From the NCBI GenBank assembly GCA_025594325.1, contig JANHCV010000004.1, positions 682,001 to 746,000 on the forward strand: a stretch of 64,000 bases of DNA. The letters run 5' to 3'. The position numbers and the translations under genes are program-made. Below are positions 18,164-31,851 of this stretch, piece after piece. Every line of letters begins with the position of its first letter. Positions within the stretch are counted from its first letter, which is position 1. The stretch is from Blastocladiella emersonii ATCC 22665 (lineage: Eukaryota; Fungi; Blastocladiomycota). The notes under the pieces were generated by a model. The model did not search any database. It was not told where the DNA came from and saw only the letters and a program-made list of their open reading frames with translations.

Positions 18164-19879
18164 TTAGTGCTGGGGCGGGAGCGGCGGCAGGTCCTTCTTG
18201 CCGATGGACGAGGAGCGGGGCGGGAACTGGCGCGCGTTGGCCGCGTCGAACGACGCCTTACGGGGCGGGGGTGGCGGGAGCGCGAGCGGGTCGAGCTGCG
18301 GGAGCTCGGGCGGCGCTACCGTGGCGGGAACCGTCGTCGTGGTGATGGTCGGGAGCGCGGGTGCGGCAGGCGCTGGCGCGGGTGCGGACGCGCCGAGGGA
18401 CAGGACCGACGGGTACGCGACGTCGGCGGCGCCCATGGCCGCGAGGTGGTCCGCGTACGAGCCGGACGACTCGACGGCCGCGGGCTCGTCGTCCTCGTCG
18501 TGCTCGTTCTCGTCGACGTACTCGTGCGCGTACTGCTCGAGCGCGTCGACGACGTCGGTCAGCCGGTCGATCCGGGCGGGCGCGGCGGGGTCGAGGTCGG
18601 CGGCCGAGTCGGTCGCGGGCTCCTCGCCGCCGTCGTCGTACACCTCAGGCTCGTGCGCCGCCACCTCCTGCACCACCTCCGCGACAGCGGGTGTCGCCTC
18701 GACCGCGACCGCCGCACTGACCGCATCCGCGATCCCGCCGTTCGGGCCGACACACACGGGCTCCCCATCGATCCCGTCGGCGGGGTACGTGACGACGACG
18801 GCGCGGAACGGGCAGTCGTCGGGGTTCTCCGTCTTACTCCCATCCACCCGCGGGAGAACGACGCACGCGATACGCGCGGTCTCGATCTTCTTGGGCTGGC
18901 GGCGGGAGCTGAGCCAGCGGACGGGCGGCTGCGCGGTGTGCTCGTCGAACCGCGTGTTGGGCGCGAGCCAGTCGAGGCGGTACAGCGGGTGGACGATGAA
19001 GACGCACGCAAAGGCCATGACGAGCCCGGAGACCGCGGCGCGCAGGCGGTTGATGTCGGACGGCGACATGTCCGCGTCGTTGTTCCCCGCGAGCCCGCGC
19101 GCGCCGAGCACGTCCTGGACCGCGACGGCGAGCTCGTCGCGCAGCAGACCGCGTTCGGCGGGTAGGTCCCGGTGCCCGATCCCGCGCTGCTCGCTGTACA
19201 TGAAGTCGCGGTACAGCGCCGTGGCCGCGTCGCGCGTGAGCGGCCGGCCGTCGTCGCCGCGGTGGAAGGTGTCGGCGAGCACATCGAACACGGCGCGGTG
19301 GATCTCCGCGACGACCGTCGTCCGCGCGTCGCCCGTCGACACGTCGACGGCGGGCGGCTCGGGCTGGCCGGGGAACGCGCGGACAAAGTTGGACCGGAAA
19401 TCGTCGGCGATCATGTCGGCGACACTCTGGATCCCGATCGGGTCGCGGTCCGCCAGCGGCGCGACCAGCGCCTCGGTCCGCGCCAGCGCGCTCGTCATGG
19501 CCTCGTGCACGGTGCCGCGGTTGAAGTCGATCGAGTTGAGCACGTGCGGCGGGGACTCGACGGCTGCGGCCGCGTGGTTGCCAGAGGAGGAGGGGGAAGC
19601 GGCGACCAGGGCGCCGTCATCGGCGCCGAACCCGTCGAGCGGCGGCAGACTCGCGACCTGCGCGGCCGACGGCACGCCCTTGAGCGAGTCGTCGAATTCG
19701 CCCCAGTTGGACAGCGACGGGAGCGCGCCGACGGTCGCGAGCTGCGCGCCCGCGGGTGCGGCAGCGGCGGGCGACGACGGCGCAGGGTCCACGGCGGCAA
19801 GGGGGTCAACCGCCGCCGCGGCGGCAGGAGCCTCGGTCGCCGTCGGCTTGGCCTTGAACCGGCCCAGGAACCCCTTCAT
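18164..19879 (-). CDS. Protein with a helical core and a Mieap/GIL1-IRKI/GrpE-head-like beta domain (paralogue A)
   Basis: Single-exon ORF from MKGFLGRFKAK. Motif LVMAFACVFIVHPLYRLDW...RFDEH...RIACVVLPRV...FRAVVVT. Clear paralogue at 27419-29129. Confidence 0.8.
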   Translation of the reverse strand: MKGFLGRFKAKPTATEAPAAAAAVDPLAAVDPAPSSPAAAAPAGAQLATVGALPSLSNWGEFDDSLKGVPSAAQVASLPPLDGFGADDGALVAASPSSSGNHAAAAVESPPHVLNSIDFNRGTVHEAMTSALARTEALVAPLADRDPIGIQSVADMIADDFRSNFVRAFPGQPEPPAVDVSTGDARTTVVAEIHRAVFDVLADTFHRGDDGRPLTRDAATALYRDFMYSEQRGIGHRDLPAERGLLRDELAVAVQDVLGARGLAGNNDADMSPSDINRLRAAVSGLVMAFACVFIVHPLYRLDWLAPNTRFDEHTAQPPVRWLSSRRQPKKIETARIACVVLPRVDGSKTENPDDCPFRAVVVTYPADGIDGEPVCVGPNGGIADAVSAAVAVEATPAVAEVVQEVAAHEPEVYDDGGEEPATDSAADLDPAAPARIDRLTDVVDALEQYAHEYVDENEHDEDDEPAAVESSGSYADHLAAMGAADVAYPSVLSLGASAPAPAPAAPALPTITTTTVPATVAPPELPQLDPLALPPPPPRKASFDAANARQFPPRSSSIGKKDLPPLPPQH

Positions 19880-20312
19880 GGCTGGTGCAGGATGGCGATG
19901 GTGGCGGGGCGACGGACGGGTTGCTGCAAGTGTGCGAGGCGTGCGCCGTGAGCGCGATGCATGGAGAGCGAGCGAGGGAGAGCGAGATGATGGCGGCGAG
20001 CGAACGAGACCCGCTTCAGCTTCGGCTTCTGGTGACTGCCCAGCGTTGCGGTGCCGGCGAGCGCCCCCGGCTTGGTGTTTCCGCTCGGTGGCAGCGCCAG
20101 GGACTCGGCCACGTTCTCGCGAGCGAGAGGGTTGCGGTGGTCGCTCGCGATGGTGATGGAGGAGATGATGCCGACGCGTTCGCGGCGTCGCTCGGCCTTG
20201 GCGCTGAGGGGATATAGAACACGACGATGGTGGGCTCCCAAAAATAATAATATATACTCGCGCGTCGCGCGTCGCGCCCGCGCGCACCGCACCGCAGCAG
20301 CGCGGAACACGT

Positions 20313-22178
20313 CTAGAACTCGTCGGTGCCCGGCCGGGCAAACGGGTTGAACCCGGTGCTTGCGAGGTACTGGAGCAGCTCGCCGCCGGGCCCGCGGTTG
20401 GTCGGGTCGAAGGCGCGCATGCGGATCGCCGAGTCGGAGAAGAGGAGGTCGAGCGGGAACCGCGTCTCGGCGCGGTACAGCTCGGGCGTCATGTTGCAGG
20501 GGAACCGGACCGTCATGACCACCTTGCACGTCTCGTCGACAAACTGCGGGACGCCCGGCGCGCGGCTCGCATAGAGCGTGAACTCGACCTCGGTCTGGTG
20601 CGGGCCCGACGGGTGCAGGAACTTGCGGAGCGGCGCGTTGAGGGGCAGCTCCTCGCCGATCTTGATGATCGGGTGGAACACCTTGATGCGCGCCGCGGAG
20701 CCCGTCCCCGTCACGTACTTTTCGTGGCCGGGGATCCGCCCGTAGACGGACCGCCGGTACACGGTGGCGACCTCGAGCCCGTACGAGTGGCGCGCGCGGC
20801 GGCTCGACATGATCTCCGGGTTGAGCCCGTACAGGAGGGCGCCGCGAACCACGGCGCCGGCGCCGAACGGGTCAAAGTAGATGACGAACCCGCGGGCGCG
20901 GAACTCGGCCTCGATGCGCCGCTGCATGTACGTCATCTGCGCGAACCCGCCCACGCACACCAGGTGCGTGATGGGCCGGCCGGCCTGCCGGCACTTGGCC
21001 AGCATCTCCTCGGTGACGGCCACGATGGTCGGGAACACGGTGTTGAAGCAGTCGATGATGTCTTGCCCCGTGAACCGCAGCTCCTTGGCCTTGAGGTCCA
21101 GCACATTCCCCTTGACCAGCTGCATCAGCGTCGGCTTGGCGAGCGCCGTCATGAGCCGCGGGTCGATCGGGATGCGGTACGGCACGTCCGCGTCGCCCTG
21201 GAACCCGTGCTTGATGGTCATCCACTCCTGGTGCAGGTGGTCGGCCACGACCGGGTACCGCTGCACCGTCGTGTCGAACGCGTCCTCGCCGACGAGCTTG
21301 CGGATGAACTGCACGAACGCGTCGTCAAAGTGCGTGGACCCGGCGGTGCGGCCCGCGCCGAGCGTGATCTCGGTCAGGTTGAGCCCGTGCCACGTGTTGC
21401 CCGTGTTGAGCTCGAATGCCGCCAGGTCGACGGTGCCGCCGCCCATGTCGAGGACCAGCACGCGCGCGCCGGGCTGCAGGTAGTTGCTGGTGATGGCGAC
21501 GTTGAGCAGGGCGGCCTCGGGCTCGAGGCAGAACTTGAGCTGCGGCGAGTGCTTGTCCGGGATCATGTCGGCCATGACGGCGGCCATGCGCATCGTGTCC
21601 TTGGCGCGCTCCGACCACATGGCGGGGATTGTCATGCACCAGGTGATCTTGGACCGGTCGACGCGGCTGCCCCACCCGGCCTGCGCGAGGTGCTCCTCGA
21701 TGTCGGCGAGCAGGTAGTGCAGAAAGTCGGAGATGACGTTGACGGGCAGCAGGCCGAGCCGCTGCATGTTCGGGTCGTGGTACGAGCGGTCCTCGGCGAG
21801 CAGCAGCTTGACGCGGCGGATCAGCGTGTGCGCGGACGCGTCGGCGCCCGGCGCCGCCAGCATGGCCTTGAGCGCCTCGTTGCCGCGCGCCACGGGCGAC
21901 TTGTCCGAGTCGTACAGCACCGCCGACAGCGTCTTCGGGTACGGGAAGTCGGCCGCCGGCCACGCCGTCTTGACGAGCATGTTGCTCCCAATCTCGACCA
22001 CCTGCTTGCGCTTGATGGTCTCCTCGAGGTGCACCGTCGGCAGCGCCCACCCGGAGTGCGACGTGCCAAAGTCTGTTCATTGTTGTTGACGGTGAGAAGC
22101 GGCGGTCGGTCGGCAGCAGTGCGCGCGCGCCGTACCGATGGCGACGGTGATGAGGCTCTCCACGTCCGTGGACATCAT
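20313..22178 (-). CDS. Atypical Hsp70 (HSPA12-like actin-fold ATPase) with short substrate-binding region and no lid
   Basis: Intron 22073-22135 restores VAIDFGTSHSG. Also WCMTIPAMWSERAKDTMRMAA, LEPEAA, VLDMGGGTVD, GSTHFDDAF, VGGFAQ and AVVRGALLYG. Confidence 0.92.
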
Positions 22179-22406
22179 GGTGTGTCGATGCGTTGCAGTG
22201 TGCTAAGAGTATGAGGAGTCCCTTCAGTCGGGGAGTGTCCCTTTGAGAGGAGAGAGAAGAGAGCGGCGCACTCGCGCGACCTTTGCGGCGAACACCCGCG
22301 TGGGCCTTCTCCCCCACCGCCACCAAGTCCTCAGATCCACCCGATAGTTCATCACACTCCTCATCAACCATCACATTCCACCTCACTCTTCACACACAGC
22401 CATCAC

Positions 22407-25400
22407 CTAGTCGTCAGCGTCGCGCTTGGCGCGCTTGCGGGGCCGCCCGCTCGACGCGCCGTCGGCGGCGCGCTTCTCGGCCTTGCCGGCGGTGCGGTAG
22501 TACTCCTTGGCCTTCTCCTTGCGCACGGCCTCGTCCTTCTTGGCCTCGCGGGCGGCGACCTTGTCGCGCTCGGCGCGCTTGGCCGCGTCCTTTTTCTGCT
22601 TGCGGTCCTCGCGGTCATACTTGAGCGTGCGGATCTGGGCCAGGAGCTGCGTGACCTTGCGCTCCTCGGGCTCGGCGACGACGGCGCGCCGCTGCAGGAG
22701 GCCGGGCCGCTTGCGCGCGGACTCGGTCTTGGGCTTGGACTTGAAGGGCAGGTCCTTCTGCAGGGTCTTGGGCACCTTGAGCGGCGCAAAGACGCGGGTC
22801 TCGGGCCGCTCCTTGATGTCGCGGTACACCGAGTCCGACTTGGACGGGATCGCGACGCCGAGCTCGTGGCGGACCGTGTTGGCGAGGCGCATGCCGCGCC
22901 ACGCCGTCTTGTCCTGCAGGAGCAGCGAGGTCACCGGGTTGCAGAACTTCTTGGGCTTGACCGGGTACCACGCCTTGAGGAACACGATATCGCTCGGCAG
23001 CACCTTGTCCTCGAAGGTGGCGCGGAACGTGCCCTCGGGCTGCGCCGCCTTCTTGACCTGCCCGCGGATCCCCGACACGGTCTTGATGGCCGCGCCCTCG
23101 AACTTGGCCACCTCGAGCGACGACGTGAACATGTCGCGCACGAACGCCGTGTTCTTGAAGATCTTGAACGGCGAGCCCGTCAGCTTGAGCTTCTTGACGA
23201 TGGCCGTCGACTTGTTGATGTCGAGCACGGTCCCCGTCGCGGCCACGCGGAAGTCGGGCGTCCCACCCTCGACCGACTGGAACGCGCAGAACCCCGTGTT
23301 GGGCGCGGCCGTGGGCCCGTAGAAGGTGGCGAGGCAGTGCATGTGCAGCGGCGTGTACTTGAGCATGCGGTTGCGGATGCGGTCGTCGAGCGAGTACAGC
23401 GGCGTGGTCTGGAACCGGCGCCACCCGAGCGACACGATGAGCGGGTCGTTGGTCTTGAGGATCTTCTTGTACCACCGGTGCTTCTTGATGCGCACCTGCA
23501 TGAACGCGTACTGGTCCTCGCCCTGCCCGACGCCGCCGACAACGACGGGGTACCGCGGGTCAAAGTGCTCGATGAACTCGCACGGCATGCGCTCGAGGAT
23601 CACGCGGACGTAGCTGCCGGGCGCGTGCCCGAGGACACGCACGCGCGACGCCTCGTCGTCGGCGCCAAACTCGTCGCGCGTCAGCTCCACCTGCTTCTGC
23701 AGCTGCTCCTTCATCACGTCAAAGTACGTCTTCTCCTTGTCGGCCTCGTCGTCCGACATGCCGTCGTACTCGGCGTCGAACTTGCGCTTGAGGTCCTCGC
23801 GCTTCTTGGCCAGCTCCTCCTCCTCGGTCGCTTCTCGCGGTACCCCGTCGCCGTCGCCGTCCTCGTCGTCGCTGAGCGACGGGCCCTTGGACTCGGCACC
23901 GGCGTCGTCGGCGCCCTCCAGGTCCTCGAAATCGCCGTCCATGTCCTCGTACTCGGGGTCCACGTCGGCGCCGGCACCCTCGGCACCCTCCTCGCCGTCC
24001 GCGGGCAGCTCGCCCGTGATGAACCGGTCGCGGATCGAGTCGAGCGTGGCCTCGTCGTCCCAGTGCGCGAGGTCCATGTCGAGGGGCGACTTGCGGACCG
24101 CGTCCTCGAGCGACCCGAGCTCGTCCGTGGCCTTCTTGGCGACGAACAGGAGGTCCTCGGCGTCCTCGACCGCGCGCAGCACCGCCTTGGCCTTGGCCTT
24201 GCCGGCCGCGTCCGCGTCCGAGGCGGCGGCAGCGGCACCGTACACGAGGTCCATGAGGTTCAGGCGCTTGCGCGCGGCCGCCTTGAAGTTGGCCACGGCG
24301 CGCTCGGCCATGCCGCGCTTCCACTGCTGGCCCGTCGCCGCGAGCTCGTCGTCCGACTCGGGGGCGTCGGCCTCGGCCTCGTCGTCGGTCATGTCGATGA
24401 CGTTGTCCTCGACGTACGCGAGCTCCTGGTCCTGCTCCTCGGCGGGCATGCCCTCGAGCGCGGCCATGGCGCGGCGCCGGCCCTCGCGCCGCGGGTACGA
24501 CGCGCCCATGTCGATGTCGGCGTCGTCGTCGTCCGAGTCCTCGTCCTCCTCGTCGTCCGAGTCCTCGTTCTCCTCGTCGTCCATGTCCGACCCGGCATCG
24601 CTGCCGAAATCGTCCTCGTCGTCGACGTCCATGTCGTCGTCGTCCGAGTCGTCCTCGCCGTCGACAGCCGCGGCAGCAGCGCCGCCGTCCTTGCGCAGGG
24701 CGTCGCCCGTGAGGGCCTTGCCCGAGTCGAAGAGGCGGATGGTCGAGGCCTCGAGCTGGCGGTCGAGGGTGCCCTGGAACTTCTGGAGGTTGACGACCAT
24801 CTTCTCGCCCTCGCCGAGCGCATTCGGGTCGTCGGCGTCGCGGCCCGTGAAGTTGCCGGGGACGTGGATGTAGATGGCGTCCTTGTCGTACATGACGCCG
24901 CCGACGTCGGACATGGGCGCGTAGATGAGCTTGTGCTTGTCCGAGAGGGACTTCTTCTGTGCGTCGGGGAGCGGGCACGGGTCGGGGATGGCCGAGACCT
25001 CGGCGACGACGTGGTCGCCGACGCCCGGGATGTGGACCTTGGCGTTGGCCTTGAGGTAGGTGCCGCGCAGGTAGCCCATGAGGGCGACGCGGCGGTCGGC
25101 CTTGGGGTTAGCCTCGAAGGTCTGGGGCGGGGTCAGGTCCTCGACGCGGTCGGCGAGCAGGTACGGGTGGGCGTTGCGCCAGATGAGCGGGCGGAACTTC
25201 ATGACCGAGATGAACCGCGACAGGTTCAGGATCTCGCTCTTCGGGTAGCTGCCGTTGATGACGCCCGACAGGTAGAAGAGCTTGGCGCCCGGGTAGATCT
25301 CGGTCCAGAACCGCTGCTTGAGCGCCTTCTTGCGGGTGCGCAGCCGCTTGTTGTTCTTGAACTTGTCGAGGTGCGTCAGCACCCCCATGATCTTGGGGAA

Positions 25401-25968
25401 CCCGTGCGTCTGCAGCACGTTGAGGAACTCGAACGTCTCCATCTCGAACCCGAACGCCGCGTCGATGGCGAGCAGCACCAGGTCCGCCGTCTTGGCCACG
25501 TCGATCATCGAGTTGAGGTCGTTGGTGCACTCGACAAACGTCACGCGCTTCTTGCGCCCGACCACCACCGTCACCGGCCCGTTGATCTCGTGGATGTTCT
25601 GCCGCGTGTACCGCTTGACCAGCGACTTGATCAGGGTCGATTTCCCGACGCCCGGCGGGCCCGCGACCGCGATCACGACGGGCGGCGGCTCCGTCGGCGT
25701 GCGGTCGACGAGCGGAACGTGCAGCTTCTTCTGCTGCAGCTCCTCCTTGCGCCGCGCCATCTTCTCGAGGCGCCGGCCGCTCTGCACGGCGAACGCCTAC
25801 GAATGGGAGATCGAGAGAAGAGGGGGTTAGTCGTTCATCGAGGTGCGTCGCGTGAGGGGGGAGCGAACTAACCTTGGGGTTGTTCTTCTCGGCATTCTTG
25901 GGCTTCTTCTTCTCGGCCTTGCGGCCCGAGTGGGCCTTGCGATGCGGCTTCTGCGGTTTGTCTTCCAT
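22407..25968 (-). CDS. BMS1: Ribosome biogenesis GTPase Bms1
   Basis: NNPK|AFA across intron 25797-25872. P-loop [43 protein letters not shown], acidic middle region. Confidence 0.98.
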
Positions 25969-26103
25969 GGCAGTAGTGAGCCGGCGGCGAGTGGAATCGC
26001 GCGCGCGTACGTCAAGGGATCAGGGAAGGAGGGCGACGCGACGCGCGACTCGAGCGAGCGGTCGCGGCGGGTGGTGGCGCGGCAGTGCGTCGCGACCCTG
26101 CAG

Positions 26104-26114
26104 GCGTCACCTGA
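26104..26114. promoter_or_regulatory. GCGTCACCTGA motif upstream of BMS1, followed by an RRPE-like AAGAAAAAATTC at about 26146-26158
   Basis: Same core as 14741 and 54498; lies 136 bp upstream of the BMS1 ATG. Confidence 0.45.
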
Positions 26115-26222
26115 TCGGTTGCTAGGCCCGACGACGCGTCGCGTCAAGAAAAAATTCAGGGTATGGGCGGTTTGTATTTACATTCAACGCTCTGGCTCCG
26201 TGGGCACGACACGACGCGCACC

Positions 26223-26797
26223 TCAGTGGTCCGTGATGAGCGACGTGACGAGCGGGAGCCGCGCGAACACGGTGCCGCGGGCCTCGTTGGGCGCGCTTGT
26301 GGGCGGCGACGGCGGCGAGCTCGCGCGCGCGCGGCAGATCTTGGACTTTTCAACAATGTACTTGTTCTCCTTGTACCGCTGCGCGAGCTCGGCGGCCTCG
26401 AGCTGGTCGGGGTTGGGGGTCAGTGATGGAACGCGTGATTCGAGGGTCGCGAGGGGGAGAGGAGAGCGTACGTATTTCCAGCCGAGCACCTCGCCGCACA
26501 CGACGCAGCTCACGTCCGCGACGACGTGGTGGCCCGTCATGAGCAGGCGCGACTCGGCGGTGCCGAGGACCACGTTCGAGCTACGCAGCGGCGAGGGGAC
26601 GGCGTCAGCGAGGTCGATGGGTGAGGCGAAGCAGCGTACAGCTTGGTGACGAGAAACGCGGGCCCGGTGCGGCCCTGGAACGACTTGGACACGACAAAGT
26701 TGCGCAGCGTGAGGTGCGTGTGGCACCGCGAGCACGTGTAGTACTTTTGGTCGAAGCCGTCGTCCTCGTCGAGGAAGGTGGTGAAGACGCGGCCCAT
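26223..26797 (-). CDS. Yippee/Mis18-family zinc-binding protein
   Basis: [10 protein letters not shown]...[13 protein letters not shown]...[24 protein letters not shown]...YKENKYIVE. Introns 26581-26639 and 26403-26471. Confidence 0.95.
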
Positions 26798-27418
26798 GGC
26801 GAGAGTTGGAAGGGGGTCGGTGATGGCGCGCGTGATGGACTGCGCGCGGTCGTGGGGCGGTTGAGGTGCACCAGAGCGTCGAGGGGTCGAGGAGCAGCAG
26901 GTTACATGCAGCGCGGGTGCACTGGATCCAGGGTCAAGCTGGAGAGGGGAGAGAGGGCGAGGGCCGAGCGGGCGGCAGCCATGGGAAGGGGGCGAACGGC
27001 GAACGGCGACCAGGGGCGCCCGCCTGAACAAGCTCTCTCGAAAACGCGTCGCCGGCGCGCGTGCGCGCATGACCGCGGCGGCGTCACGCGAGCCGCCACC
27101 AACGCGTCGCGGCTTCTTTCTTCCTTCTCCTCGCCCAAGCCTTCCGTGCCCCCTCCACCGCAACGCCTCTCGTGGGAACCCAGCGATCTGGCCAGCCAAC
27201 TCGATGCAACCGCGGCTGACCGATCCGCGGCGGCCGTCGGGACCCGCGGATCTTGGCGACGGCGATGTTCTTGGCGCCCGATTACTCGTCGTGTGGAACG
27301 CTGGGGCTTCGATGCGTGTGTGCCAGGTGGTGTCCGTTTCTCTTGGCACGGCACGCGGTGTAAAAGAGCACCGCGTCCCCCGCGCACCGTTCCCTTTCTC
27401 GCAACCACACTCATAACC

Positions 27419-29129
27419 ATGGCATCGCAGCCCACAACATCGTCCGACTACACCGCGCACGCGCACGCGCCCGCACCTGCTGCCGATGAAGGGCACGGGT
27501 CGAAACGGAGTACGCGAGCTGCTGCCGGACCTCGGTACGACCGCGGTCCTGACTCTCCGCGCGTGCGACTTCGTAGAAGCGCTCCTCGGCCTGGTCAAGC
27601 CGCTGCTCAACCACGCCATGGGCCGCCCGCACGCTCACTCGGCGGGAACGACGACGCCGCCGCCGCCCAACGGCGCCCACCATCATGGCGGCATGGCGAC
27701 GGCCGCGCCCTCCTCGCACATGCAACGCCCGCCGCCGCCGCTCCCGCCCGTCGAGTCGCTGCTGCTCGAGTCGCCGCTGTCGAGCTCCCGCCCCGACCAG
27801 CAGTCGCAGCAGAATGGGCCCATCACGGCGCTCTCGTCCATCGAGTTCAACCCGTCGACGGTGCACGAGGCCATGGACAGCGCGCTGATCCACACGCAGA
27901 CGCTGGCCACGTCGATCCTGGTCCGCGTCGCCGACGCGCACGAGGCCAACGGCACCGCTGACCCGCTCACGCAGCGCCAGCTTGACGCGCTCCGCCACGA
28001 CCTCCTCGGCGCCTCGCCCCAACCGCACCTCGCCCACCTCTCCTTCACCGCGACCGACGCGCGCGCGTACCTGACGTCCGTCCTCGGCCGCGCGATCCTG
28101 CCGCACGTCGCCGCGTGGCTCCCGCGCACCGCGTCCGCGCACGCCGACCGCGCCGCCGCGCGCGACCTGTGGGACGCGATCAAGCGCGCGCAGGCCGCCG
28201 GCCGGCTCGCCGGCGACCCCGTGTCCGAGCTGCCCGAGCACCTGCGCGAGAAGGTGGTCCGCGCCATCGTCGACGCGGTCCTCCCGCACTTTGTGGGAGT
28301 CGACGTGACCCCGGGCGACCTCCACCGCATCGCCAACACCGTCCTCGCCTGCGCGCTCGCGGTCGCGGCGATGCGTGTCGTGCACCCGCGGTTCGAGCTC
28401 GCGTGGCCTGACCGGCACGAGGTGGTGGAGCCGGCGAGCGTCAAGGTGCCGCCGATGCGCACCATCAACGTCGCGGGCGGCGGTGGCGGCGGTGCGAGTG
28501 GCTCGGCAACTGCGCGGGTCGCGTTCACGGTCTGGCCGCGCGTCGCGACCGAGGCCACCGAGATCAAGCACTCGGCCGACGTGTACCGCGCCGTCGTCGT
28601 CGCGTATACCGGCTCGGACCTGGCGTCGCTGACCCCCGTCGCCGCGGTCGCGCCGGAGCGGCCGGTTAGGCTGAGCCCAGCGCTTCCCGTTCGTCCCAAA
28701 ATCACCACCCCGCAGCCCGACCTCACCGCCCGCCAGCCCGCGCTCCCGCCACGGCCCGCGACCGGCGACGGCCTGCGGCCGGAGCTTCCACCGCGCCCGC
28801 CGAGCGCACTCGCCCTGGCCCTGGCCCTGGCCCCGCTGCCGCACCCGTCAGCGGCGACGACGCGCGAGCCCGACTCGCCCCAAGTCTCCGAGTTTGACCG
28901 CAACGGCGGCGGCGAGGCGCCCGCGTGCGAGGCCGGCGTGTACCCCGAGGACACGTACGCCGCCGACGAGCCCGAGCCAGAACAACGCGAGCACGACGCG
29001 CTGGACCTGTCAGCGCACTTTGCCATCGACCTCGCGCGCGACGAGCGCGACAAGCGGGCGCAGGTCGACCACGATCTCGCGCTCGACGAGCTCGGGTTCA
29101 TGATGGGCACGGTGTCGACGTGGAAGTGA
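27419..29129 (+). CDS. Mieap/GIL1-IRKI/GrpE-head-like domain protein (paralogue B of 18164-19879)
   Basis: Intron 27510-27576. SSIEFNPSTVHEAMDSAL matches NSIDFNRGTVHEAMTSAL in A; VVHPRFELAW...TARVAFTVWPRV...YRAVVVAY matches IVHPLYRLDW...TARIACVVLPRV...FRAVVVTY. Confidence 0.85.
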
Positions 29130-29311: not shown

Positions 29312-30278
29312 ATGATGACGGACGTCGCGCTGGTCTCGCGCGAGGAGGTTGAAGGTCCGCGCCGCGTGCCCGTGATGCATGCATGCACTCCCAACCCCAT
29401 GGATGGATTCTGATGAATGAACGGCGATCGCGCTCCTATAGCCTTCTGCAAGCTCAAGGAGGACGAGCGCAAGTGGGAGCCGCGTACGCTGCTTACTGCT
29501 CCCCGTGTCATCGCGGCCACGACGGTCCCTGACGCTCGCGCGGCGTGATGTACTGTAGATTTCGAGCCCGTGCTGATGCACACGGCGCAGTGTGCCGAGC
29601 TACTGTACGTCCGCGCTCCCCGCCGTCTCGGTCGACCGAGCGCTCACGGCTGACCGTCATCGCCCGCTGCACCAGGTTCCCATGGCAGCTGACGCGTGAG
29701 CTGATCAAGGCGCGGATCATCGAGGTATGCTCCTCGCCCTTCCCCTCACGCCACAATGCAACTCACCACAGACCCCGCCCGTCCCCTCGCACCGCAAGCA
29801 GGTCGTGACGCGGCTCAACACAGATGCCGAGTCGCGCGGCGCGGCGCCCGACAAGGCCGTGGTGAACGCGCAGCTGCGCGTCCTTGGCCGCCACTTTGAC
29901 GCGCTCACGTCGGCGCCGTTCACGACGCAGCGCCTGTGCGAGATCGCCATGGTCCCGCAGCAGGCCGACCTGCTCAAGTACCTGCGCGCCGTCGAGAAGG
30001 TCGTGTGCGTGTCGACCACGTCGCTGCCGCCCGCGCCCGTGGTTGGTGAGGCGGCAGCGCAGGCGGCCGAAGAGGACGAGCCCATGATGCTCGACTCGCA
30101 GACCCCGACGCCGACGCCGACGAGTGTCAATGCTGGGATCCCGCCGCCGCCCGTGCTCGTCATGCCAGTACCGGCCGCTGTCACGGCGGCGAGCGAGGCG
30201 GTGGCCGCGGGGATCGCGACATCGATGCCACCACGCTCGGCGACGCTCGAGGTCACGGACGCAACTGACGCGGTTTGA
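29312..30278 (+). CDS. PPP4R2: Protein phosphatase 4 regulatory subunit 2 (PPP4R2/Psy4)
   Basis: Introns 29355-29440, 29484-29558, 29605-29675 and 29725-29771 give LFPWQLTRELIK...APFTTQRLCEI...KYLRAVEKV. Confidence 0.85.
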
Positions 30279-30411: not shown

Positions 30412-31851
30412 TTACTCCTTCTTGGACTTCTTCGACTCCTTCTTGGCCTTCTTCTCGGCCTTGGCAGCCTTCTTGGCGGCCTTGTCAGCCTTGTCGGCCT
30501 TCTCGGTCTTCTTGGGCGACGCGGGGGCGGGGGCGGCGGCGGCGGCGGGAGCCTCGGTCGACTCGGCCTCCGAGTCCGACGACACGGCCTCGGCGGCCTT
30601 GCGCTTGGTGGCGGGGATGGTGGCGTCGGCAACGGGGGCGGCGGCGACCTCCTCGACGGGCTTGGCGGCGTTGGGCACGTCGGTGCGGTTGTAGTCGACG
30701 TACGACTCGGTCCACTGCTTGGGGGTGGTGTCGACGGGGCGGCCGAACTTGTCGAGCTTGCCGTCCTTGATCATCTTCTTCTTCTCCTGGGCCTTGGGGC
30801 CGAGACCCCAGCGGCGCGGGTACGTGTCGCGCTCCATGATGACGCGCTTGATCTTGGCAACGACGCCGTGGTCGACCGTGGCCATGACGGCGGTGGTCAT
30901 CTGGGCGATGGCGAGGGCAATGGCCTCACCCTTGGTCGTCATGAGGACGATCTCGTCGCCGACCTCGATGCCGGCCTCGAAGCGGAGCAGACCGGGCACC
31001 ATCATCTTGGCGCCGTAGCACACGGCGTTGACGGCCGAGTCCTTGACGACGACGCGCTTGTAGCCGACGAGCAGCTTCTCGAGCGGCATGATGACCGAGC
31101 GCAGGTACGACTCGTCCTTGGTGTTGTCGTAGGTCCACTGCGCGTCCATGACGTCGTGCATGGTCACGAGGTTGTCGTTCTCGGACAGGGCACCCGAGCG
31201 GACGCGGCGCAGCTCCTGCATGTGGCCGCCGGTGCCGAGGAGGAGGCCGAGGTGCACGCACAGGGTACGGATGTAGGTACCGGCCTCGCACGAGACCCAG
31301 AAGACGGCGAGGTTGCGGTCCTGGTCGAACTCGATGAGCTTCGAGTCGTAGATGGTGCGGATGCGCAGCTGGCGCTTGACGGCCGAGATGACGGGCGGGC
31401 GCTGGAACAGCGAGCCGGTCAGGGTCTCGATGGCGCCCGCGAGCTTGCGCTCCGAGTCGATGGCGTCGTGCAGGCGGAGCACCGACACGTACTCCTTACC
31501 GGCCGACTGCTGCGACTTGACCAGGCGCGTGGCGCGGTCAATGCAGACAATGAGGCAGCCCGTGACCTTGGGGTCGAGCGTGCCCGAGTGGCCGGTCTTG
31601 TCGCAGCGCAGGATGCGCTTGATCCAGGCGACCACCTCGTGCGACGACGGGTTGGCGGGCTTGTCGAGGTTGATGACACCGTAGCGGATGTACTCCTGCA
31701 GCGGGCGAGCCAGCGGCGACGAGCCCGACGGGATCGGCGTGTAGTGGGCCGAGCGCACGTGCAGCTTGTCGTAGTTGGCGAGCAGCAGGGGCCACTCGGA
31801 CGTGTCGAGGGCGGGCGTCTTGGACTCGGGCTTGATGACGAAGTCGGTCAT
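30412..31851 (-). CDS. CBF5: H/ACA snoRNP pseudouridine synthase Cbf5/dyskerin
   Basis: [32 protein letters not shown] domain, Lys-rich tail; single exon. Confidence 0.99.

Follow-up and report, generated by a model that had tools for sequence, protein, structure and literature searches.

Does the close neighbourhood of two genes encoding unusual proteins reflect a working partnership between their products? This question is raised by a locus of the zoosporic fungus Blastocladiella emersonii ATCC 22665 (assembly GCA_025594325.1, contig JANHCV010000004.1), in which the gene of an atypical Hsp70 of the HSPA12 type is followed by gene A, a member of a small orphan protein family, while a second member of this family, gene B, lies on the other side of the ATPase gene. 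The locus was examined within a stretch of 64,000 nucleotides (nt) of this contig, hereafter the window, whose G+C content is 58-72%. The initial annotation of the window had proposed a chaperone module in which A and B would be exchange factors or adaptors of the ATPase, after the example of GrpE, the nucleotide-exchange factor of DnaK and of mitochondrial Hsp70. To our knowledge, HSPA12 proteins have no established co-chaperone. The analysis reported here indicates that the ATPase genes of this subclade adjoin A-type genes of the family at four loci and that the core of A and B has a predicted fold already known from animals and plants. The adjacency at four loci suggests, short of proof, that the two proteins work together, and the probability that A-type proteins and the neighbouring HSPA12-like ATPases form a functional pairing is put at about 0.4.

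Recurrent adjacency of HSPA12-type ATPase and A-type genes

The genes and domains concerned are given below by their positions in the window, with lengths in nt, base pairs (bp) or amino acids (aa):

22136..22178, minus strand: exon 1 of the HSPA12-like ATPase gene, with the ATG at 22178 and 43 nt of coding sequence as read from the sequence; its product is MMSTDVESLITVAI plus base 1 of the Asp codon in the DFGTS phosphate-1 motif
22073..22135, minus strand: predicted intron of the HSPA12-like gene, 63 nt, GT..AG, with splice sites gtacgg...aacag
20313..22072, minus strand: exon 2 of the HSPA12-like ATPase gene, encoding the actin-fold nucleotide-binding domain with DMGGGTVD and VCVGGFAQ and an atypical C-terminal region
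19880..20312, minus strand: spacer of 433 bp between the ATPase gene and gene A
18164..19879, minus strand: gene A, 571 aa, identical to database protein P0001
18764..19552, minus strand: conserved domain of A (residues 110-372), made up of six helices and then a small beta sheet
27486..29129, plus strand: gene B, 547 aa, identical to P0003, a diverged paralogue of A
27819..28628, plus strand: conserved domain of B (residues 112-381)

The layout first described, with the HSPA12-like gene 433 bp upstream of A in the same orientation and B about 5 kilobases (kb) away on the opposite side, was verified in all its coordinates. Gene A begins 433 bp past the stop codon of the ATPase gene, and gene B lies 5.3 kb from the latter, past the genes of BMS1 and of a Yippee protein. 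Removal of the 63-nt intron restores the reading frame and the VAIDFGTSHSG motif, giving a product of 600 aa, free of stops, with the N-terminus MMSTDVESLITVAIDFGTSHSG; a paralogue of the ATPase gene at another locus of the genome, L001, has its intron at the identical place.

The assignment of the ATPase to the HSPA12 type was borne out by its features and by named matches. In the ESM Atlas, its features score 0.97-0.98 to HSPA12, DUF8340 and 'actin-like ATPase' clusters, and a word search matched HSPA12A/B-like proteins of fish and bivalves (E-values of 1e-15 to 1e-25) as well as fungal actin-like ATPases and actinobacterial 'Hsp70 family' proteins, all at 22-31% identity. The Pfam HSP70 model gives 16.8 bits, under its cut-off of 20.6; many of the relatives found by word search are likewise devoid of any precomputed Pfam domain, and sub-threshold HSP70 matches are common in the HSPA12 family. 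The HscA and DnaK models match residues 96-276 of the ATPase (E 4e-6 for HscA, up to 1e-4), and the solved DnaK and Ssb1 chains match it at E about 0.01. Furthermore, the phosphate-1 (AIDFGTSHSG), phosphate-2 (LDMGGGTVDL) and adenosine (VCVGGFAQ) motifs are intact.

A tblastn search of all fetched loci with the window ATPase revealed three further copies, the paralogues at linked loci being 70-75% identical. At L001, a paralogue 73% identical to the window ATPase lies directly upstream of the gene of P0002, co-oriented with it and separated from it by a spacer of about 400 bp, an arrangement like that of the window. At L004 and L005, two ATPase copies that are 99.8% identical each lie 2.4 kb from a copy of the P0005 gene, in convergent orientation. 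All four members of this HSPA12 subclade, which is tight and Blastocladiella-specific in the tree (n = 4 genes), adjoin a family gene of the A-type branch, a supported clade comprising A, P0002, P0004 and P0005, in one of two orientations; no further ATPase of the subclade was retrieved from B. emersonii by word search. The genes flanking the ATPase/A-type pair differ among loci, and such pairs occur on two deep branches of the family, A and P0005 being separated by 1.85 substitutions per site. The recurring linkage of HSPA12 and Mieap-like genes that the initial annotation called for was thus found at four paralogous loci of B. emersonii and in no other genome tested.

Some of these loci have particularities of their own. 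L004 and L005, both on JANHCV010000013.1, lie about 136 kb apart in opposite orientation and are near-identical over several genes, their P0005 copies being identical. The same applies to L007 and L008, about 104 kb apart on JANHCV010000002.1, in opposite orientation and near-identical over several genes, with identical P0007 copies. Both cases reflect an artefact of the assembly or, alternatively, large inverted segmental duplications of recent date. At L001, the ATPase gene carries a single in-frame TGA (L001:8304-8306) at the position of a conserved Trp of the window copy (PTM*SDRAKD vs PAMWSERAKD); it is otherwise intact (73% over 580 residues), and in the public annotation it appears as two genes, of 165 and 420 aa.

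In non-coding sequence, no GAAnnTTC heat-shock element is present in the 433-bp spacer or upstream of the ATPase gene, A or B, and the spacer has no significant similarity to its L001 equivalent. The sole conserved non-coding piece found between paralogous loci is a 15-nt exact match with L001 located just 5' of the ATPase start codon (window 22191-22205, minus strand; E 4e-4), which may be part of a 5' untranslated region or an initiator element.

The other genes identified around the pair by Pfam matches are:

22407-25787: BMS1 (RIBIOP_C, AARP2CN), between the HSPA12-like gene and B
26223-26735: Yippee/Mis18-type protein, between the HSPA12-like gene and B
29727-30278: PPP4R2, beyond B
30412-31851: dyskerin/Cbf5 (DKCLD, TruB, PUA), beyond B

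The A/B family and its predicted fold

A and B are paralogues, as had been supposed: BLASTP aligns them at 28% identity over 267 residues (E 5e-12), which delimits a common domain of about 260 residues. In A, this domain is preceded by a disordered Ala/Pro-rich N-terminus and followed by an acidic, proline-rich C-terminal tail. P0002, from the same genome, is 54% identical to A overall and 71% in the domain. A profile built from A, B and P0002 was used for an exhaustive HMMER search of 1.84 billion representative proteins (E < 0.001), which retrieved 8 representatives, 7 from B. emersonii and 1 from Catenaria anguillulae; as P0005 and P0007 are each encoded twice, B. emersonii has nine family loci. 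The family is, as far as its sequences indicate, small, fast-evolving and restricted to Blastocladiales. A 301-aa gene beside the HSPA12 gene of Allomyces was considered as a further member and rejected (E 0.2-0.6 with the family hidden Markov model, no family signature).

The C-terminal signature that had been noticed in A and B, VHP.Y.L.W ... ARVAF.V.PRV ... YRAVVV.Y, is conserved in the eight representatives, and a loose regular expression for it retrieved family members only from a six-frame translation of about 300 kb; it can therefore be regarded as family-wide and family-specific. No family member scores above threshold with any Pfam or NCBIfam model; in particular, neither A, B nor the other members reach the gathering score of PF16026, PF04859 or PF24994. 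The sole Pfam echo is that of GIL1_IRKI_C on B (E 0.058-0.39, about 11 bits vs a cut-off of 27), with nothing in the seven other members. With A, whole or reduced to its domain, word-index searches gave only P0002 among the matches listed and the ESM Atlas feature search gave no usable match, and the family profile found chance matches only among PDB sequences.

Outside the A-type branch, B, P0006, P0007 and the Catenaria protein do not form a resolved clade (stem of 0.004, drawn open); 'B-type' is used here as a label for B, P0006 and P0007. These three proteins carry a second short conserved piece at their extreme C-terminus (window 28980-29126 in B), acidic and helix-prone, with DL...ER(D/E)... 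followed by a hydrophobic segment; the A-type proteins are devoid of it.

AlphaFold2 models of A and B were predicted separately, both from one eight-sequence alignment. The core of A is modelled with confidence as a compact six-helix bundle followed by a small beta sheet, with a mean predicted local distance difference test (pLDDT) of 86.3 and a predicted template modelling score (pTM) of 0.88. The weaker model of B (pLDDT 66, pTM 0.70) has the same order of helices and strands, its beta part being of low confidence. The sub-domains singled out by the initial annotation (18800-19050 and 28330-28610) fall on the portion with the beta strands in the models of A and B, respectively.

Fold comparisons with ESM Atlas representatives, in which the structures are predicted on both sides, matched the A and B models to plant DUF641/GIL1_IRKI_C clusters with template modelling (TM) scores of 0.61-0.67 by query over 214-234 residues, and to MIEAP clusters with a TM score of 0.53 over 182 residues. 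Mollusca are the group in which the matched MIEAP clusters (851 and 119 members) are most frequent. Both models also match unnamed clusters of Ascomycota, Mucoromycota and Basidiomycota. Because both match DUF641/GIL1_IRKI_C and MIEAP clusters, the likeness to Mieap and GIL1/IRKI that had been proposed from motifs holds at the fold level, and no sequence model detects it. On these models, the A/B core is a helical bundle with a small beta domain as its cap, a fold shared with animal Mieap and with the DUF641/GIL1-IRKI (COST1) proteins of plants, and the A/B family can be counted as a new and highly divergent member of this known fold class. In one Basidiomycota cluster of the Atlas (100 proteins, 628 aa), a region that matches the A model (TM 0.63) occurs together with an MMR_HSR1 GTPase domain; this cluster may represent a natural fusion of an A-like fold with a nucleotide hydrolase.

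Among solved structures, GrpE is the top-ranked fold for the A model, its chains ranking 1, 4 and 5 of 48,161. A second structural comparison of this model added four more GrpE rows with three new entries. Its best or near-best solved matches comprise GrpE of Geobacillus, E. coli and Thermus, human GrpEL1 and the GrpE of entry 9a81, five different proteins. The alignments cover 94-117 residues and involve the C-terminal halves of GrpE, that is, bundle helices and the beta domain. This ranking is non-trivial because GrpE had been named before any structure was computed. Furthermore, in a forced alignment, the conserved strands of the family come in the same order as those of GrpE, and one GrpE cluster is among the 30 Atlas models nearest to that of B (TM 0.52 by target, 92 residues). 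In a Foldseek search of the PDB, the matches were limited to globins and cytokines, and none fell below E 0.2. The likeness of modelled A to GrpE is thus best described as architectural, real but weak, and is no evidence of homology.

A functional pairing and its alternatives

If the pairing is functional, the A-type protein would serve the neighbouring ATPase as a dedicated partner: it would dock on the nucleotide-binding domain by way of its C-terminal alpha/beta domain and would tune the ATPase cycle or recruit the ATPase, in a manner parallel to that of GrpE acting on DnaK or of COST1 acting on the GTPase RHD3. B, though of the same family, would have no particular connection with the ATPase. 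Outside support for such a mechanism is limited to three points, namely COST1-RHD3, the fungal cluster with a GTPase domain and the GrpE likeness. COST1, a protein of the DUF641 family, which is termed plant-specific, binds RHD3 and stimulates its GTPase activity, and in an AlphaFold3 model the C-terminal domain of COST1 lies beside the GTPase domain of RHD3 (PMC13189119).

The adjacency could, with equal probability, be a historical accident: the Mieap/DUF641-fold proteins, with their disordered tails, would be scaffolds or regulators acting on other partners (such as a GTPase, membranes or condensates), and a small two-gene block in which the HSPA12-like gene happened to lie would have undergone two or three duplications. 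All the linked loci could go back to one chance adjacency that spread with such a block, and spacers of 0.4-2.4 kb are rarely broken by rearrangement, so that retained adjacency needs no selection. The distribution of the linkage also weighs against a functional pairing. Indeed, all linked loci belong to one genome, in which the linkage is absent from five of the nine family loci; P0004, P0006, both P0007 copies and the Catenaria gene have no ATPase gene less than 10 kb away, and B is not specially linked to the ATPase, housekeeping genes intervening. Outside B. emersonii, five HSPA12-like loci of other species (Allomyces, Borealophlyctis, Ambispora, Suillus and Saccostrea), checked with the family profile, the family signature and MIEAP/GIL1 Pfam matches, have no family, MIEAP or GIL1 gene beside the HSPA12-like gene. 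The upstream and spacer regions share no common regulatory motif except the 15-nt match, and the known DUF641 partner is a GTPase, not an Hsp70 (PMC13189119).

However, simple block copying predicts proportional distances in the two gene trees, and the ATPase and partner trees are not proportional, so that the accidental reading needs an extra assumption. The tree leaves the three ATPase lineages as an unresolved trichotomy, separated pairwise by 0.38-0.62, whereas the partners are separated by 0.39 between A and P0002 and by 1.85-2.0 between either of them and P0005. The terminal branches of the L001 pair are longer than those of the window pair, both for the ATPase (0.32 vs 0.078) and for the partner (0.27 vs 0.12). 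The mismatch requires one of three events: a burst of change on the A/P0002 stem, homogenisation of the ATPases through gene conversion or the like, or a second independent juxtaposition, which the different orientation at L004 and L005 would fit. In addition, an accidental adjacency would make the rank of GrpE as top solved fold a coincidence.

A functional pairing could be part of something broader, Mieap/DUF641-fold proteins being GrpE-like dedicated co-factors (exchange factors or cycle regulators) of HSPA12-type Hsp70s across eukaryotes. This generalisation is unlikely; were it true, a eukaryote-wide class of co-factors would have left its first genomic trace in the Blastocladiella pairs and its second in the parallel expansions of both families in molluscs. 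The literature searched contains no repeated pairing of Mieap-fold genes with an HSPA12-type ATPase and no relevant link of Mieap with GrpE, HSPA12 or Hsp70.

It is improbable that A and B are relatives of GrpE in the strict sense, that is, exchange factors that would open the HSPA12-type nucleotide cleft through a beta head. The structural matches of the A model, which include the GrpE beta domain, the GrpE cluster near the B model and the common order of strands would all agree with such a relationship, but no link to GrpE appears at the sequence level. Indeed, hhalign comparisons of the family profile with E. coli GrpE and with an 81-sequence GrpE alignment give a probability of 0.1-0.2%, the alignment being a poor profile of low diversity (Enterobacteriaceae only, 86-99% identity); GrpE is absent from the PDB sequences retrieved with the family profile, and there is no match to Pfam PF01025. 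The B model, whose beta part is of low confidence, has no GrpE in its PDB top 50. The absence of a sequence link to GrpE also counts against a functional pairing.

The last alternative draws on five loci at which metacaspase (Peptidase_C14) genes lie less than 10 kb from family genes:

L001:12198-13514: metacaspase
L005:17641-18359: metacaspase
L006:20714-21771: metacaspase
L007:18265-19581: metacaspase
L008:16286-17602: metacaspase

That HSPA12-like, family and metacaspase genes merely accumulate, with no physical partnership, in lineage-specific accessory islands possibly linked to stress or cell death would suit this recurrence, the recent inverted duplications that gave several of the metacaspase-bearing family loci and the strong expansion of HSPA12 genes in bivalves (PMC13580251), a group of the phylum in which the matched MIEAP clusters are commonest, but is improbable, as the window pair lies amid housekeeping genes (BMS1, Yippee, Cbf5, PPP4R2) and not in an island, the examined part of the window has no metacaspase, and the recurrence itself may be due to chance, depending on the genome-wide number of metacaspase genes.

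Comparison with known systems

Whatever the fate of the pairing, an orphan family of Blastocladiales is now placed in a known fold class, and the locus supplies a fungal structural counterpart of the DUF641/COST1 family, whose authors ask whether non-plant counterparts exist (PMC13189119). The Mieap/DUF641 proteins have only just been assigned a first biochemical role, that of COST1 on RHD3, and the function of HSPA12 is 'presently unknown' according to a 2026 review (PMC13580251). The pairs of B. emersonii thus offer a testable hypothesis, according to which the Mieap/DUF641 fold class would regulate HSPA12-type ATPases through a GrpE-like head.

On the ATPase side, the closest known system is that of HSPA12A/B (PF00012 with PF27033, DUF8340). 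The window ATPase resembles these proteins in its features, sequence and nucleotide-binding motifs, although it shares no more than 22-31% identity with members from other genera. Pairwise, its near relatives are the three other genes of its subclade. On the partner side, GrpE (PF01025) has a long N-terminal helix that forms an asymmetric dimer; the A model is a compact six-helix bundle. Mieap/SPATA18 (PF16026) resembles A and B in its fold, with a TM score of 0.53 that is below those of the plant family, and has no sequence match with them; its matched clusters are commonest in a phylum, Mollusca, in which HSPA12 is also strongly expanded (PMC13580251).

The nearest likeness is to the plant DUF641/GIL1-IRKI proteins (COST1, GIL1 and IRKI; PF04859 and PF24994). 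It extends at the fold level across nearly the whole 260-residue core of A and B and is accompanied by the weak sequence echo of GIL1_IRKI_C in B only. The A/B family differs from these proteins by its restriction to Blastocladiales, by its long disordered tails and by its lack of any Pfam model at threshold. The partners differ as well: that of COST1 is a dynamin-like GTPase, whereas the candidate partner of A is an Hsp70-type ATPase.

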